This document shows, piece by piece, positions 51,944 through 61,358 of a stretch of DNA of 64,000 nucleotides. Where the stretch lies: contig DF237112.1 of assembly GCA_000708835.1 (NCBI GenBank), positions 99,342-163,341 of the forward strand. The letters run 5' to 3'. The notes beneath the pieces are model-generated. The model had not been told where the DNA came from. It saw only the letters and a list, made by a program, of their open reading frames with translations, and did no database searches. Numbering within the stretch: position 1 is the first letter of the stretch; each line of letters starts with the position of its first letter. Source of the DNA: Klebsormidium nitens (Eukaryota > Plantae > Klebsormidiophyceae). Position numbers and translations under genes: made by a program.

Positions 51944-54900
51944 CTACAACAACTTGCGGCTGGAGACAATGCGGCGGACGGTGCCCGCGCTGTAATCTGC
52001 AACGGTCGGAGAAGAAGAGGGGTCAGCATCAGCAAGACTGGTCCTCCGCAGAACTCACGGAGCAGTTCCGACTTCTCTCCAAGGTTTCAGAAGTAATGAA
52101 CCTGTCAAAACCCGGCGCTGTATGCACCGCGCTGTCTACGTTGTGCGCGATTGCGCGTTTGAGCCGGGACTGGCTTAGCAGCCGAACGAGGTGGCTGCCT
52201 TGCCGACTGGAAGTTGCGAACTCACTGCGTCAGGCTAGCTGATCACTGCGTTTTCTTTCATGCTCTGCGTTGAGGGGGAGTTTTGCGGTCTATAGAGACG
52301 GCCAGTGTGCTGACTAAGCATTCCGCATTTCGCGTACAGTAAAATCCTAAGGTCGGAGTGCCCTAGAAGCTTGGGAGGGATTCTCTAGAGGAACATGCCT
52401 GCCAAATAGGTCGAGAACATAGCGGATCCGAGAAACTTGGCAGCACGTTAAGTCGAGCCGCAGATAAAAACCCGTCGGTAACCAGACCCGGTCAGAGAAC
52501 ACGGTAAATCGAGACCCGGTTTTGAGTACGCTTTTCAGTATGGGCAGAGAAGATTGAGTCCAGTGTTGATTCGAAATGAGGAGACGTTTCGGACGATATT
52601 GACAGCTTTAGGAATTTTCAGGGCCCATATGTTCTTAAGAAGGGGACTATTCAGTCGGAAGCGTGCTTAAAGTCGTTTCAAGACCGTACTGAATGGGGTT
52701 CTGATCTATTGGGAAAGACGTTTGCTGGCAAGTGTGATGATGCTCGTTATGACTGTGCAAAACCCCACTCTCAACATATTAAATTGCTTGCCGGAGATGA
52801 CAATCTGCGGGCACTTGCCGACTCTGTTGTCAAGAGCGCCTCCAATCCTAGTGGGCTACTGTGCACAACCAGTCACATGTGCTGACAGCAGCCATGCACA
52901 TTCGGACTTCAACTTATTTCTTAAACTTCCAAGACTTGAAAATTGTATCTCTTGGAAACGCCTAACGAAACTGGACACGTGACCTGAGGACACGTGGCTT
53001 ACCAGGAATCAAGATCTGCGGGCAAGACTTGCAGTTGTTGGAGCCCAGGGTGCCGATGGGGCACGTGATGAGCTCGGTCGGGAAGCCGGCCGCGTCGCGC
53101 CCGTAGCAGTACCAGACCTGAGAAATAGCCACGTGACGTCATATTTACGGAAGCACTCGTTCGCTCGTAGCAGTACCAGACCTGAGAATTAACCACGTGA
53201 CGTCATATTTACGGAAGGACTCGTTTGTTACTTTAGCATGACATGATAGGACGCGTTCTGTCGCTTTAGCGACAGATAAGTTCAGACAGAATTGATCAAG
53301 TCCTCTCTGGGTCTAGTAGCCGACCTGTGGCGGTCGCCTCGTCCGCACTACCAAACGTGGGGGAGGAGCACTTTAATGGCTTGGCGAAAAGTTTTGGGAT
53401 TTCACGAAATCTTCTTTAGAAAGTGGAGAGCGAAATCATATCAAGAACAAAATGTTTGGACAGAGCATCGAGGCAGACAGCTGGCACTTCTTGCAGGGAA
53501 TTGGCCGCGCCGAACATTGAAGGGGGTTCGTCGTACTTCCTTGTGGCGACTCTTAATCAAATAGGTCTCATGGATCAACACCAAAATGAAAGCAGAAACA
53601 GAGAGTACGATGCAAGATACACGATACAAGAACGGGAGGAAAGCGTACAGGAAACAGCGGAGTTAGACGACGGAACGCCGAAATGCAGCCCGAACAGCTG
53701 GCATCTTCTTATCATAAAGAAGTCCATCTTGTTTCCGGCTCTTCTCTATCATTATTTTACAAAACAGCTTTCAGATACTTCGCCGGAAAGAGACAACCAC
53801 GGCAGAACGCAGACGAAGTCGGAGAACGGAACGGTTTAAGAACGGAACGCCGGAACGCAACTCGGACAGCTGGCAGTTCATGTCGCCCTGAGGTCTGGCC
53901 GTGTTGTACGTTGAATCAAACACCCCACGCTTAGTTCATATCATCAAATCAAATGAGGGAACGACAAAGCGGAACCGGAACGCACCGCGGACAGCTGGCA
54001 ATACCTGTCACACTTGGGAATGGCCCTGTTGCTCATCACAGGAAAAATCTCTTCATTTTATTCACGTTACGTTTTCAGATAAGGAAACGGAACTAAAAAC
54101 GGAACAGCAAAGCGGAAGCCGGAACGCACCTCGAACAGCTGGCAGACCCTGGATGGCCGTGTTGTTCATTCAAATCAGCAGAGTCAGAAACCGCATTCTT
54201 TGAACGAAAGCAAAGCAGAAGCTGGAGCGCACCTTGGACAGCTGGCAGTTCTCGTCGCACTGGGACGTTAGAAAACTGCAACTTTACTCACTTTACGTAC
54301 CTACTTTCTGTAACCGAAACGGCAAACGGAACGAACGAGAGCGAAGCGAATAACAGAACGCACCTCGGACAGCTGGCAGTTCCTGCCGCACTGGGGATGG
54401 CCGTGTTGTTCATCACATGAGAATCCTCTCCATCTTGGTTCGCCTTACGCCGTATCCCAGGAAACAAATGGAACGGAAAGCGGAACAGCAAAGCGGAAGC
54501 CGGAACGCACCTCGGACAGCTGGCAGTTCCTGTCGCACTGGGGGATGGCCGTGTTGTTCATCGAGTTGACGAAGGCGGTGGTATCGACGGCGGTGCCGCG
54601 CTTCTGGTGCACGTTCACATCGGCCCAGGAACCGTTGGCGGTCAGCTGCTTGGTGATGCCAATGGCGGTCTCGAAGAAGGCGGTTTTGTTGTCGGTTAAG
54701 TAACCGCCCACACCTGCAGAAGGGATTTGTGCTGCTTGAGAGACCATACAGGGTTACTGCAAATGTGGTTTCGTTGGTGTCAAAGCAGTGTCAGAAAAGG
54801 CGGTCTTGTTGTCGGTTAGGTAACCGCCCACACCTGCAGAGGAAATTGTGCTCCTTGAAAGACCATACAGGGTTACTGGAAAGTAGTGAAACAAAACTGC

Positions 54901-57900
54901 GGTTTCGTCAGTGTCAAAGAAGTGTCAAAGAAAGCGGTCTTATTGTCGGTCAGGTAACCGCCCACACCTGCAGAAGCAATTTGTGCTACTTGAGAGACCA
55001 TACAGGGTTACTGGAAAGTAGTGAAACAAAACTGCAGTTCCATTAGGTCAAAGAGGTGTCAAAGAAGGCGGTCTTGTTACCGGTTAGGAATTCGCCCACA
55101 CATGCGCAGGTAAAGGATCCGCAGCTAAGGATACAGGCTTGAATCTGCGAAATAAAGAGTGCACCTTCCAAAAAAGGCGGCTTTGTCAGGTAACCGCCCA
55201 TATGGATCTTTACAAAAATACTGCACGGTCCAAAGAGGAGGGTCCCGTCAGGTAACCGCCCACATAATCAGTGCACTGTCCAAAGAAGACGGTTTTGTCA
55301 GGTTACCCCCCCGACCTGCAGGTAAGAAGATCGTTGCTAAAACAGGGCGTCAAAATGAGGAACGGTTCCCCGAAGCGACCAATTGGCCGAGGCACCGACC
55401 AATCGCCCGAAAAAGCACGTGGTCAGTCATTTGTCGGGGACTGTGTCTCGCCGGAGAGCCTCGTTCATAGGGGCGCCACGAGCGGAAAAGCTCACTGTTT
55501 TTGCCACTTTGTAGAGTAGCGACTATTGAAACGAGCACCCCAAACGTGGCGGCGTCAAGCGTGCCCGGTCACAGAGGTTGCTCATACCCAAACCTTCTCG
55601 ACTGGTAGAAACGACACGGTTGATTGATCGTTGCGAGTTACGAGCAACGACCGCAGGAAATTTTTACCACATGCGACGCACTGATATCTGGTCAAAACTG
55701 CAGCATTCAAGCGCGAAAGATGTTTCGTTTCACGAGAAAATTCTGAGGATTGAAATACCAGGTTCGGAACAATAATAACTGGTCAGAAAGGCAACATTCA
55801 CGCGCGAGGGGACCTGACAGGAACCGTAATTAGGAGATTTGCTCAAGACGAGAGAAAGGCACTCACAGGAGGCGTGCTTGAAGAACTCGTGGTCGAGGAA
55901 GGTGCGGTCCGCACCCAGGAAACCCGGTGCGTACCGGGCCATGTCCGCCTGCAGGGCCTGTAATTCACACCAGAGCGCCAACGTCAGAACTAAGCGCCAT
56001 CGTCAGCTGTAAAAAGTCTCTCTGTAGGAGAAAAGCAGAGTATTTTGAAACTTCCTAGGTCGCACTGTCAGCATGTATACGGCAAAAGAAGAGACTACGG
56101 ATCGGTGTCACATCAACCCTACACTCGATGCGCTTTTCGAAAGGCCTTGCAAGCCACGCCTACTCTAGTTTCCTCGACAACGAGCTTTCTTCTCACGGGT
56201 GCCCCTATCCCTGAAACTTACAAAGCAAGTCGAAAGCAACTTTATAGTGGGCGTAGGCGTCATGCCGACGGCATCGCCGGATTGACAGCGGGTTATGGCC
56301 CCTACCCACGGATGGTTATGGGCGGTTACGGGCTGGTTAAAATTGGTTAAGTGTCCAATGACCACACTTGGGCGGTTACCAGCCCTGGAACAACTCAGAC
56401 TAAAGCCCGGTTGTCTGTCGCTGATACGAGACTCAACTCTGCTAATCAGCCTGGTTAGCAACCAGAATTTCCTGTGAAAACTCTGGCGGCGGCACGAGTC
56501 GGACGGATTCGGTTCGTCTAACAAATCCATTTGTGCCGTCCGATCTGAGATGCACTCGCGAGTGCAGAAATCCACTTTAAGCCACAGAGCCGCAGCGCGG
56601 GTGTTCCTAACCTGGGCACGTGCCTTAGCGGTTTTCGCAATGTAGGTGCCGAACCTATTTCGAAAAGAAGCACGAGCAACGACAGCGGAGCGACCTCCAC
56701 ATAATGAAACCAAAGGGCAGCTGCAAGTACTACGGCCGAATTGCGGAACCCCTCGAGAATGGAGACACCACCGAGATCGAAACGTGACGAATACGACAGC
56801 GCCCCAACGAAGTCCTTCGTCAGCCACGCCCTTTGAGCTAGAGCCTACCGAAAGGATGCTTCATTCGCGTTCTTCCTCGATCGATTGTGGTGTTCTTGGA
56901 GCTCAAAATCCTCTTTCGACTGCCACTCACAATCCCAAAATATCATCTGACTTCCAATTCGAAGAGCCACTGGCAGATTTCAGTAACCACAGTCGGGCTC
57001 TTCTGGAACCTGCCCTGAACCTGGAAGCTTTGACGGCGGCGATTGCATGGGGCAAACTCCCGCTGGGATGACGTCAACCAGAGTATGAAGAAAATGCCTA
57101 CCCTCACCATCAGGTCCTCAATGCTCCCTCCTGGTCTCTTATATTCGCAAGCAAGGAACGCTTCCAACACCATATCAAATCGACAGGGTAGCGGCACCCA
57201 TTCTGTAACCTTCGCGAACGACGATTTCGAGGAGCTTTTGAGTCAAGGTTGAGCATCCCCACAGCTCACCGTCAACACAAACCCTTAAACCCTAAACCCT
57301 AAAATCCAGCGAGAAAACTCACTGTCACAGTCGCCTCTTCCACCTGGCAGTGCGTGACGCCGTTCGCACGTATGCACTGCTCGTAGTTGACCTGCGCGAG
57401 ATTTCTCTCATACGTCCGAACTCACAATCAACACCCAGCAATGAGACAACGTGGACCTACCGAAACGGTCGCCTCTTCCACCTGGCACTGCGTTACACCG
57501 TTGGCGCGCATGCACTGCTCGTAGTTAGATTGCGTAAAGTTGGCGGCCGTCGCATTGGCCCACGGGCAGAGCCCGCCGTTGACGTGGCACCTGGAGTAGT
57601 CAATCCTGCCGGGCCCTGTCGCGGAGCAGTACTGGTTCCAGCCCTGCGGAAAGGAGTGGGCTCTTGTCAGCAGGGAGCAGCAACGGGGCCTCTAACCATG
57701 CAACTCGAGGAAGAAAATGAGCCAAGACAATGATATAGACTCCAACAAACACGATCATCCTAATCCAAAGACGTACCTGCTCCGCACCTTCACGCACCCA
57801 TGCAAATCCTCGAACAAAATCTGCCCTTCCCAGTGCGGTTACCCTACTGTTAATTAAATACCCCGCGAGAATGGTACCGGAGAGGGTATCGTATGGACTT

Positions 57901-60900
57901 ATTTGGGCAGAACGTCTAGTCGTTTCTGGTTCAAAACAAAAGGAGAGAAACAAGCCCATGTTATGACTCCATCTTTCATTCTTTCAACTTCGTAGACTAA
58001 TAATGATAAAAAGACTGTGTAACGGAAACAATCTATGATGGATCCGACTCCTAGACGAACCCCTGAATCGGATCCGAAAGGACCTGGTGCCCTTTCGAAG
58101 TGGTGCATGCAAGCTCGCGAGGCTGTTTGCAAAGCGGGTCAGCAGCTTAACCTGGGGGGCAGAAAGGACCCAAAGGGTACGAGCGAGTGACGGGTAGTCA
58201 AGAACGAAAGAGTGTGTTTTACATGGACACGTGTATTGACCAAGATCCACAGAGGGCGCATCCTGCTCTTTGAAACGCCTTCAATCCCCGCCCTAGCAGT
58301 CTGATACGAAGTGACGTCTTTCTGACGTCCTTGCACTTATCATCCAAAGGAGCACACTGAATTCGGGAATGGACTTGACTTAAGGACGACTAAGCAAATC
58401 TCTCGTCTGAATCTTCGGACAATCAGACGACTTCCTAGAACGACACTGGAAAATCAAATGAAGCCAAAGCCAAACCACGTGTCCGTCCATGCCACCAGAA
58501 CTTTCTGACCGACCCCTCTAGCGGAGCTGTAGCGAACTCTCTTGCAGGCTTCCAAAAGGCCTTCCGTTTCGGGATATCTGTCTTGAGATACGAACGCATT
58601 CCTGGGACAGACAGCAGCACACAAACAGCAGCACACATTCTAACTGTGTCCATCCGTTCTGGTGACTGGCAGTGAAAGCAAACTGGTAGAATCTAGCGTG
58701 CAGAAGCGGAAACGGTCACGGAAGGTGGTACGTCCTGTGGAACTAAGTCAAGCCGCTTTAGTCTCCAATCAGAGTCCTAGAGACATCAACGGGACTTTAT
58801 GTGAATAACTCTAAGGGGCTCTCAGAGAGCTTATGCCATCCACTTTAGATGAGAGCAGCCAGTCAGGTGTTTGGGAACAAACCGTCCGATGAGAAACTCT
58901 TTGAGTGAGGTTGCTTAAAGGTAAGAGCGACTGCCAACTCACACCTTTCCCTTCCCAAATGCATTCAACACTACAAGAACCATCGACGTAGGCAGAGGCA
59001 TAGAACGCAGCAACTCAGAGCTCCAGCAAAGAAGACAATCTCAAACGTGCCACACTCCAGTGCAAAGTCGACACTTTGGATAAAAAGATAGCAATGCAAT
59101 ATGTACCTGGTAGGAACCGTTGTAAGCGGGCGCAGCAGGCTCGGTGGTGTAGAGAGAACCGTAGTCGGTCCACAGGCCGTGTAGAACCAGGTTCTGAGAG
59201 CCCTGGGTGCCAGCCTGAGACAGCCCACGAGAGGAAAGTGAGCAAAGGCCCAATTTTGAAAGGTGGACGGACTGGGAGCCTTTTGCTGACAGTTTCCTCG
59301 TTGTGAAGAGAAATGAAACGGAGCTCCACAGCGTCAGACTGCTAGACATAACCTATCCATGCTTTATGGAAGAATGCTGCCGGCGTGATGAGCTGTATGA
59401 ATGCAGCCACTTGTCAAATAGCAAGGACGGTAATCGACTGGTATTCACCCCGCTGTTGTATTCAGCCCTCTGTTCGCAATGAAAGGGTCTCAACGAAGGC
59501 CTAGGTGGGCTGGAGAATAGTCCTCTACTTGAGAAACCCTACCGTGAGGGGTTAAAGGCCGACTACGCCTGAAAGTTCACTGGGTGGAAACCATGTCAAG
59601 AAGCACTCGGCAGGCTAGTTACTTTGTCCATCACTTTATGCGCAGCTGAAGATTGTGTGCGCAACCGAGTCTGTCAAACTTGAGCTCGATGGAAGGAAAT
59701 TGGGTAGTTCGCAGTTTGAGCCCAAACGATTAAAAATCAGCAGCAGTTTCGTCAATTGTAAGAAGGCGCCACAGTGACAGGCAAAATGGGGACCCCAGAG
59801 TATCGCTTGGAAACGCCAAGATTCTGGTCTGCGAGAAGTCACTCCAAATTGGATGCACAAAACCCCCAACAAACAGCACTCCATTGCGTGCAGAGGTCTA
59901 ATGCAGAAAGAGGCGCGAGTCTTCAGGTCCTTGAACTTGTCCGTACTTGAATTCCACAAAAGGCCTTGGAGCATTTCTGGAACCTTTACCAGCACAAAGC
60001 AGACGGAGGATAAAAGCAGCCTGTCTTCAAGAAGGAGAGAGCATGAAGAAGAGGTGACGATACAGTTGAAACTCATTAGGGGGGGGTGGGTGTAAAACTC
60101 ACCAGAGTGTAGCTGGAGCAGAAGCCCCCCCCGGCGGTCGAGTTTGCGCTGCAGGAAGTGGGTGCCCAGTAGAGGGCAAGGGCATAGTAGCCGAACTTGC
60201 CGGGGGGCGCGTTGGTGAGACCGCCATTGAAGCGGAGTGCGGTGGGGTTCTGGGCGCAAAAGTCCTGGACAGAGCTGCTGTTGCACTTGCCAGAGCTGCA
60301 AAGGAGGTTTTCATTGCTTCAAAACGTTGTTTTGTTTGAAGACTATTTGGCACAGACTTTTTGCAACTGTCATTGATCGGGGGAAGGCTGCCTGGGGGGT
60401 AATAATATGTTTGGGGCAAGACTGTCTGATGGCAAAAGGTGCTTCAACTAGGGTAAAATCATTTCCCTGGCAACACAGAGCAAAATTTTAGGGGGGCGAC
60501 TGGGGGGGGGGGAAGGGGGGGGGGATCGAAGATGGTGGAAGGAACATGCTCTTACCGCTAGCCAGTTGGCAAAGAGAAAGCTGCCAATTAATGCCCAGCC
60601 TGTCATCAAAATATGAAAGCGACCTAAAGGTAGTGGGCGTAACAAAGACAGATGTTCAACCCCCTTGGTGACACTTGCCCCCCCTTCCCGTAGCGGTAGA
60701 TGGCACACCCTGGCGCTCAAGATGCACTCAATCAAGCAGCTCGCTTGGAAGCCAAAATGGCTTTTATTCTGAACAAGACCAGCCCCCCAGCTCCGTCAAG
60801 CTCCCCAGCTCCGTCAACCGGAAGCAACAAGCTGGATTGTGACATTTTCTTATGTATTCGGTCCCCTAATCCCTTCTTCAGACAATTTGCCCCTACAGCC

Positions 60901-61358
60901 CACACACTTGCAAGTGCTCTGCATGTCAGACTCAAGCTCAACAGAACATTGTTGGAAGTCCCTCCCCAATCCCACTATAATCAAGAATCCCGCACCCCCG
61001 ATCTCATGTTCCTCCCAGCTCAGCCTAAGCTGCCAGACCACTCTCACCAAGCATATATACCCCATAGATTACCCTCAACTTTCTTCTCCATGCATGATGA
61101 CCTCAGGGTGACGCCTCACCTGTACCCGCACACTCCGACAGTGACGTTATACACCTGGCACCGTCTCATGTTGGCGTCGCTCAGGCACCAGTAAGATGGC
61201 CCGATGGTGCACGGGTCCGGTGTGATCGGCCCCGTGAAGAGCGCGTTGTTTGGGGTGGTCGCAGAGTAAGTGCCATTGTAGACACTGACCGTCTGCGCGC
61301 TGACGGCTGTCAGCGCAGAGAGAGCTAGGACGGCGATAAAGGCCTTGGTAGCTGCCAT
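51944..61358 (-). CDS. Secreted ribonuclease T2 with N-terminal saposin-A-type (SapA) module, 8 exons, about 394 aa
   Basis: Exons 61358-61120, 60295-60103, 59214-59107, 57643-57461, 55957-55867, 54713-54511, 53117-53003 and 51996-51944 sum to 1185 nt in frame. Features: signal peptide MAATKAFIAVLALSALTAVSA, CTIGPSYWCLSDANMRRC, FGYYALALYWAPTSC, CAS-I LVLHGLWTD, CAS-II FLDHEFFKHASC, and C-terminal CDRNCQLSEVWYCY...LITCP. The last exon is the least certain. Confidence 0.88.
53102..53224 (-). repeat. 64-bp tandem duplication of the acceptor and start of RNase T2 exon 7
   Basis: cgtagcagtaccagacctgagaa...ccacgtgacgtcatatttacggaag occurs twice. The copy at 53166-53224 lies in the intron. Confidence 0.9.
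53460..54500 (-). repeat. About 7 decaying echoes of the 3' end and donor of RNase T2 exon 6
   Basis: The core ggaacgcacctcggacagctggcagttcctg..gcactggggatggccgtgttgttcatc is found at about 54355, 54225, 54121, 53978, 53852, 53675 and 53460. The outermost copies are the most diverged. Confidence 0.92.
54770..55325 (-). repeat. About 6 decaying echoes of the acceptor and 5' end of RNase T2 exon 6
   Basis: The core ggcggtcttgttgtcggttaggtaaccgcccacacctgcag is found at about 54800, 54935, 55065, 55175, 55247 and 55290, with fidelity broadly falling with distance. Confidence 0.92.
57279..57304 (+). repeat. Short interstitial telomere-like (CCCTAAA) tract
   Basis: aaacccttaaaccctaaaccctaaaa. Confidence 0.6.
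57323..57391 (-). other. Candidate 69-nt in-frame cassette exon duplicating the end of RNase T2 exon 4
   Basis: cgcgcag|GTC AAC TAC GAG CAG TGC ATA CGT GCG AAC GGC GTC ACG CAC TGC CAG GTG GAA GAG GCG ACT GTG ACA|gtgagt, phase 0/0. Confidence 0.5.

Follow-up and report, generated by a model that had tools for sequence, protein, structure and literature searches.

A Klebsormidium nitens RNase T2 with an N-terminal SapA-like module and a cysteine-rich insert

Introduction

Does a single gene of Klebsormidium nitens encode a ribonuclease (RNase) T2 joined to a saposin A-type (SapA) module, and does that module remain on the mature enzyme? The question is raised by a gene on the minus strand of a 64,000-nucleotide stretch of K. 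nitens DNA (the window, to which all position numbers refer), which runs from position 61358 to position 51944 in DNA of eukaryotic character with a G+C content of about 52%. In a preliminary description of this locus, manual splicing had joined a signal peptide, a SapA-like motif and an RNase T2 core with a cysteine-rich insert, and the architecture had been called unusual. RNases T2 are acid RNases found universally in vacuoles, lysosomes and secretions; they cut single-stranded RNA by acid-base catalysis via a 2',3'-cyclic phosphate. Surveys of the plant enzymes recognise classes I to III only (PMC9250077).

We conclude, with a probability of about 0.8, that the gene encodes a secretory-pathway RNase T2 of a small, conserved and mostly green-algal subfamily, and that the module at its N-terminus would remain integral to the mature enzyme.

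The RNase T2 core and its insert

The gene product is KFL_001630220 of K. nitens (P0033), a protein of 394 residues deposited as a "hypothetical protein" and labelled "Saposin A-type domain-containing protein" in UniRef. When individual exons were compared with Pfam and with PDB sequences, none of them matched RNase T2 and exon 1 alone gave a match, to SapA; the single RNase T2 exons went unrecognised because they are too short and too divergent. Because Pfam left the RNase exons open and a 64-residue query is too short for a word-index search, exon 2 (60103-60294, minus strand) was used as the query of an exhaustive HMMER scan, which returned 27 proteins, the full-length ones having 346 to 418 residues and alignments that begin at about residue 80-120. 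When the best match, Mesotaenium ME000329S05583, was used in a word-index search, P0033 was retrieved. The protein was placed on the window by tblastn, and the joined translation of eight minus-strand exons, separated by introns that are all GT-AG, was exactly equal to it; the joined exons served solely for this local equality check, and the whole-protein searches and the folding used the deposited P0033. The manual splicing agreed with the deposited model at its start and at its end, and the peptides quoted in the preliminary description were all recovered in place on the minus strand.

P0033 matched the Pfam Ribonuclease_T2 profile (PF00445) with 57.5 bits (cut-off 26, E 2.5e-15), and the same profile was matched by 19 of the 19 members of the family described below. 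Comparison with tomato RNase LE gave an alignment across conserved active-site segment (CAS) II and the C-terminal half of the protein. The catalytic set consists of His156 in CAS I, encoded by exon 3 (59107-59214, minus strand) within the motif LVLHGLWTD (59164-59190), and of His264, Glu265, Lys268 and His269 in CAS II. The latter is encoded by exon 5 (55867-55957, minus strand), which carries the helix preceding CAS II, then FLDHEFFKHAS and the first base of a cysteine codon; the peptide FLDHEFFKHASC lies at 55865-55900 of the minus strand. These five residues were kept in every family member that covers them, those of CAS II being invariant in all 19, and W159 and D161 of CAS I were conserved across the family alongside H156. 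The earlier view that both histidine motifs persist in variant form holds.

An AlphaFold model of the full-length protein, built on an alignment of the 19 family sequences, had a predicted template modelling score (pTM) of 0.80. Comparison of this model with RNase T2 crystal structures gave a Foldseek probability of 1.0, and VIA-align gave Z scores of 15-16 against solved RNase T2 structures, with root-mean-square deviations of 2.4-2.6 Å over about 180 residues, covering model residues 109-380. For structures 1jy5, 1vd1, 1iyb and 1dix, the Z scores of the predicted model were 15.8-16.0, with root-mean-square deviations of 2.4-3.1 Å over 179-187 residues. The model is thus predicted to have the alpha+beta fold of the RNases T2, while sequence identity to the solved enzymes is just 15-23%. 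The protein is very probably an active RNase, judging by its catalytic residues, and by analogy with the family it would use the customary acid-base route with a 2',3'-cyclic phosphate.

The modelled fold (Z scores of 14-16), the profile match and the catalytic residues are those of the plant S-like RNases LE, NW, NT and MC1, human RNASET2, fungal RNase Rh and Actibind, and a signal peptide, disulfides (predicted here) and glycosylation sites are likewise shared with the eukaryotic RNase T2 enzymes. However, the K. nitens protein has about 390 residues whereas those enzymes have about 190-240 and, unlike them, it has an extra N-terminal module of six cysteines and about 60-70 residues, 20 cysteines in all and a longer spacing between CAS I and CAS II. 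It also has ten NxS/T sequons.

The distance between the catalytic histidines was 108 residues in K. nitens and 90-130 in the family, and the gap between CAS I and CAS II exceeded that of the Pfam Ribonuclease_T2 profile by about 50 residues (43-61 in the alignments of relatives). Most of the excess is encoded by exon 4 (57461-57643, minus strand), whose product is a family-specific cysteine-rich insert with sequons NAT and NFT; its peptides GWNQYCSATG and YEQCMRANGVTQC lie on the minus strand at 57614-57643 and 57485-57523, respectively. The five cysteines reported for this insert were identified as C186, C199, C206, C224 and C233 and are conserved in nearly all 19 members. C224 lines up with a cysteine of RNase LE, and therefore probably four of the five are additional to the usual set. 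Both sequons were kept in most members. The insert was modelled as short helices, with a predicted local distance difference test score (pLDDT) of 84-94.

A candidate mini-exon, 4b, was seen downstream of exon 4 at 57323-57391 of the minus strand, in frame and encoding VNYEQCIRANGVTHCQVEEATVT. It duplicates the 23 codons at the end of exon 4, with 61 of 69 nucleotides identical, and it has an AG acceptor, a GTGAGT donor and phase 0 at both ends. The differences from exon 4 are about seven synonymous to three non-synonymous, and the flanking intron is not alignable. Mini-exon 4b was found neither in the deposited model nor in P0040, the transcript product with 80% identity, nor in any homolog. 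Its sequence is compatible with either a cassette exon, by which the protein would gain another C-x8-C loop, or a pseudo-exon of recent origin.

The N-terminal module

Exon 1 (61120-61358, minus strand; residues 1-79 of P0033) carries the start codon, a signal peptide (residues 1 to about 22, 61293-61358), a linker and the module itself (residues 48-79, 61122-61217); the peptide PDPCTIGPSYWC lies at 61185-61220 of the minus strand. After the signal peptide, the pattern is C50-x2-GP-x2-W-C58-x8-C67-x9-C77-G-Y, followed by C84 and C93; the module of six cysteines comprises about 50 residues. The Pfam SapA profile (PF02199, cut-off 22) was matched by the whole protein with 25.3 bits (E 1.5e-5) and by exon 1 alone with 27.8 bits. 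P0033 thus exceeds the Pfam cut-offs for both Ribonuclease_T2 and SapA, and the combination of signal peptide, SapA-type match, RNase T2 core and cysteine-rich insert given by the preliminary description was correct and lies on one gene model.

Is this module a true SapA module? It has in common with the SapA modules of prosaposin and proSP-B the motif C-x2-GP-x2-WC-x8-C and an N-terminal place in a precursor of the secretory pathway. It differs from them in its partial profile match, in the spacing and probable partner of its fourth cysteine and in the lack of the SapB domains beside which SapA modules occur in precursors, and it is attached to an enzyme, whereas theirs are found in sphingolipid activator or surfactant precursors. 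A SapA module has four cysteines in two disulfides within about 34 residues; C50, C58 and C67 fit this pattern while the fourth cysteine, C77, is displaced. C77 and C84 were missing jointly in P0035, P0039, P0041 and both Sanguina proteins (P0006 and P0028), and this joint loss therefore points to a C77-C84 bond outside the SapA core. C77 thus probably pairs with C84, and the canonical fourth SapA cysteine would not simply be C77.

The resemblance could therefore be convergent, the module being a family-specific cysteine-rich extension that shares the C-x2-GP-x2-WC-x8-C pattern and is not SapA by descent. In accordance with this, the matches in the family always ended near position 22 of the 33 profile positions, the fourth cysteine lies 9-10 residues past the third, versus about five, its probable partner is outside the SapA core, no SapB domain accompanies the module (no SapB family was matched in any of the 19 members) and most members scored under the Pfam SapA cut-off. 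However, that curated cut-off was passed by the K. nitens protein, P0035 and P0016, the SapA profile was matched at one and the same site by 13 of the 19 members (E<=0.1), and the automatic UniRef name agrees with SapA. We consider convergence possible but doubtful. The module is best termed SapA-like, since it passes the database threshold but agrees with SapA in part of the profile and of the cysteine pattern. A search of the ESM Atlas with the N-terminal module gave no usable result.

The linker and the fate of the module

The module is connected to the core by exon 2 (60103-60295, minus strand), which corresponds to residues 80-144 of P0033 with a 100% match and encodes C84, C93, the linker FC..P.AL.FNGG and the first part of the RNase T2 core (FGYYALALYWAPTSC). 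In an alignment of 13 members, linker residues F92, C93, G104 and G105 were invariant.

A different fate for the module, suggested in the preliminary description, would make it a pro-peptide or a vacuolar or lysosomal sorting determinant, the mature enzyme being the RNase core alone. Such a role would suit RNase T2 enzymes, which are typically vacuolar, lysosomal or secreted, and it would suit a module located at the N-terminus, straight after the signal peptide. SapA modules themselves occupy pro-peptide regions in prosaposin and proSP-B and are not the lipid-binding SapB fold (PMC4933373). For the latter reason, the further suggestion that the enzyme might act on lipid-associated RNA has no basis. 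However, the linker between module and core is among the best-conserved stretches of the protein, and no conserved basic processing site was seen in it in the family alignment. Moreover, C93, which precedes the core and is conserved with the cysteines of the module, probably bonds the module to the core-proximal segment, and the module was confidently modelled within the full-length model, with a pLDDT of about 80-90. Because of this conserved linker without a conserved processing site, the closeness of C93 to the core and the confidence with which the module was modelled, we favour a module that is integral to the enzyme, and we hold its removal as a pro-peptide, or its use as a sorting determinant, to be unlikely.

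Our overall reading has to be weighed against several observations. The SapA match spans profile positions 2-22 of 33 only, and the high pLDDT of a small module is no proof that it is retained on the mature enzyme. In addition, the K. nitens protein departs from its own family in both catalytic segments; compared with its green-algal homologs it has a T for a P in CAS I (HGLWTD versus HGLWPD) and an A for a G in CAS II (KHASC versus KHGSC).

We propose that the signal peptide would be cleaved, leaving a six-cysteine module of about 50 residues, the first half of which resembles the SapA profile, connected by the strongly conserved linker to an RNase T2 core. The core, with its full catalytic set, would cut single-stranded RNA through the 2',3'-cyclic phosphate, as other members of the family do, and the insert of about 50 residues would be held by predicted disulfides and bear N-glycosylation sites. 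The N-terminal module would stay as a folded, integral part of the mature enzyme and would not be a removable pro-peptide. The 20 cysteines (potentially ten disulfides) and the ten sequons would suit an extracellular or a vacuolar or lysosome-like enzyme that recycles RNA, and from the sequence we infer an extracellular or vacuolar acid RNase serving RNA turnover or phosphate recycling.

The idea that the fusion is an artefact of the gene model, exon 1 coming from another transcript, finds some room in the length of intron 1 (about 820 nucleotides) but is very improbable, as the consensus donor AG/GTGAGG, at which exon 1 ends in phase 2, and the acceptor ttgcag/C, which supplies the base completing a split serine codon, join in frame, the resulting junction CGY-S-SGKC equals the CGYSSGKC of the homologs, and in relatives a single open reading frame on transcript contigs that lack introns covers both parts.

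Distribution of the architecture

At least 19 cluster representatives have in common a signal peptide, the C-x2-GP-x2-WC module and the insert, and as many as 20 cysteines are conserved in them. The architecture occurs in the streptophyte algae Klebsormidium, Mesotaenium and Chlorokybus, in the chlorophytes Chromochloris, Hariotina, Sanguina, Apatococcus and Myrmecia, on several JGI and Logan contigs and in the rotifer Didymodactylos carnosus. Named homologs, besides that of Mesotaenium given above, are Chlorokybus Chrsp22S03440, Chromochloris Cz10g26160, Apatococcus WJX74_004599 and Sanguina WDW36_008250. Homologs were 39-53% identical to the K. nitens protein, and an environmental fragment, P0040, was 80% identical. 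Green-algal homologs thus share the architecture, the insert and up to 20 cysteines with K. nitens. The design called unusual in the preliminary description is indeed so, but it is not unique, the protein having been deposited with a SapA label and at least 19 representatives sharing it.

Contigs L001 (1661 nucleotides) and L004/L005 (about 1.9 kb) contain the entire open reading frame, module and RNase, with no introns, and are therefore transcripts; taken as such, they place the module and the RNase of relatives on one mRNA. No land-plant protein was present among the named matches, which come from limited searches, and we do not claim that the architecture is absent from land plants. The family tree was star-like, with the rotifer on a long, unplaced branch, and we therefore draw from it neither a direction of transfer nor an order of events.

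A wider scenario would be an ancient green-lineage RNase T2 clade with a SapA-like head and a glycosylated insert, present in both chlorophytes and the streptophyte algae, lost ahead of the land plants and transferred once to a bdelloid rotifer, with the head acting as a prosaposin-style lysosome- or vacuole-targeting domain or as a pro-domain released by pH. We regard this combination as improbable; if true, it would represent an enzyme-attached use of the SapA module.

Both domains can be detected in KFL_001630220 as it stands in NCBI and UniProt, and as far as databases go the architecture is therefore no discovery. Searches of the literature that paired RNase T2 with saposin, Klebsormidium with RNase T2 and saposin A-type with ribonuclease found nothing relevant, and neither Klebsormidium nor saposin is named in a survey of the plant RNase T2 enzymes from 2022. 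The proteins are best described as an undescribed subfamily of a well-known enzyme family, conserved across green algae, about twice the usual RNase T2 size and carrying both a SapA-like module and a stapled insert. The subfamily offers a simple test case for the function of a SapA module on an enzyme. In practical terms its importance is modest, as the catalytic machinery is ordinary and the protein already public.

In the bdelloid rotifer D. carnosus, contig CAJNOQ010015688.1 (L002:2006-3501) encodes a SapA-like module, RNase T2 and insert (P0017/P0029). The contig has an even G+C content of 31.5%; the gene on it is interrupted by three short introns and encodes an extra C-terminal hydrophobic tail. 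From these features, the gene looks integrated and not like algal contamination, which makes it a candidate for horizontal transfer.

P0027, a protein of 508 residues from a JGI contig of 18.9 kb, begins with the C-terminal part of one family RNase and closes with the N-terminal module and the first part of the core of a second one, a cysteine-rich stretch lying between the two. It probably represents two merged tandem genes of an uncultured alga.

Gene structure

Exon junctions 2/3, 3/4 and 4/5 are all in phase 0, while the 5/6 junction splits the codon of Cys272 after its first base. Exon 6 (54511-54713, minus strand) completes Cys272 and encodes the middle of the RNase T2 core as far as CQLSE, a part that aligns with RNase LE. 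Exon 7 (53003-53117, minus strand), located by tblastn with homologs and P0033, encodes the C-terminal stretch of the core (VWYCYGRDAAGFPTELITCPIGTLGSNNCKSCPQILIP), which includes four cysteines, and exon 8 (51944-51996, minus strand) closes the reading frame with a short tail, DYSAGTVRRIVSSRKLL, before the stop codon (51944-51946). The 7/8 junction, IP/DY, agrees with the family consensus IP-x-Y. The splicing of exons 3 to 8 and the tail are confirmed by the transcript fragment P0040 (971-nucleotide contig).

Two other endings were considered. A coding end at the stop beyond the open frame of exon 7 (about 52962) was rejected, since P0033, the IP-x-Y consensus and the tail of P0040 favour splicing to exon 8, and a candidate exon at 52060-52125 was rejected for its wrong phase.

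Three separate local duplications of exon junctions were seen within the gene, between 53098 and 55113. The acceptor and 5' end of exon 6 have three to four upstream copies (54779-55113), the 3' end and donor of exon 6 have at least five decaying downstream copies (53670-54417), and the acceptor and 5' end of exon 7 are included in a 64-nucleotide tandem duplication (53098-53225).

The C-terminal tail RRIVSSRKLL, encoded by exon 8 at 51947-51994 of the minus strand, reads RRIVSGRKL- in the closest relative and is absent from the rest of the family. Specific in this way to Klebsormidium and a close relative, and not found in other green-algal homologs, it may act as a signal for sorting or retention in this lineage.

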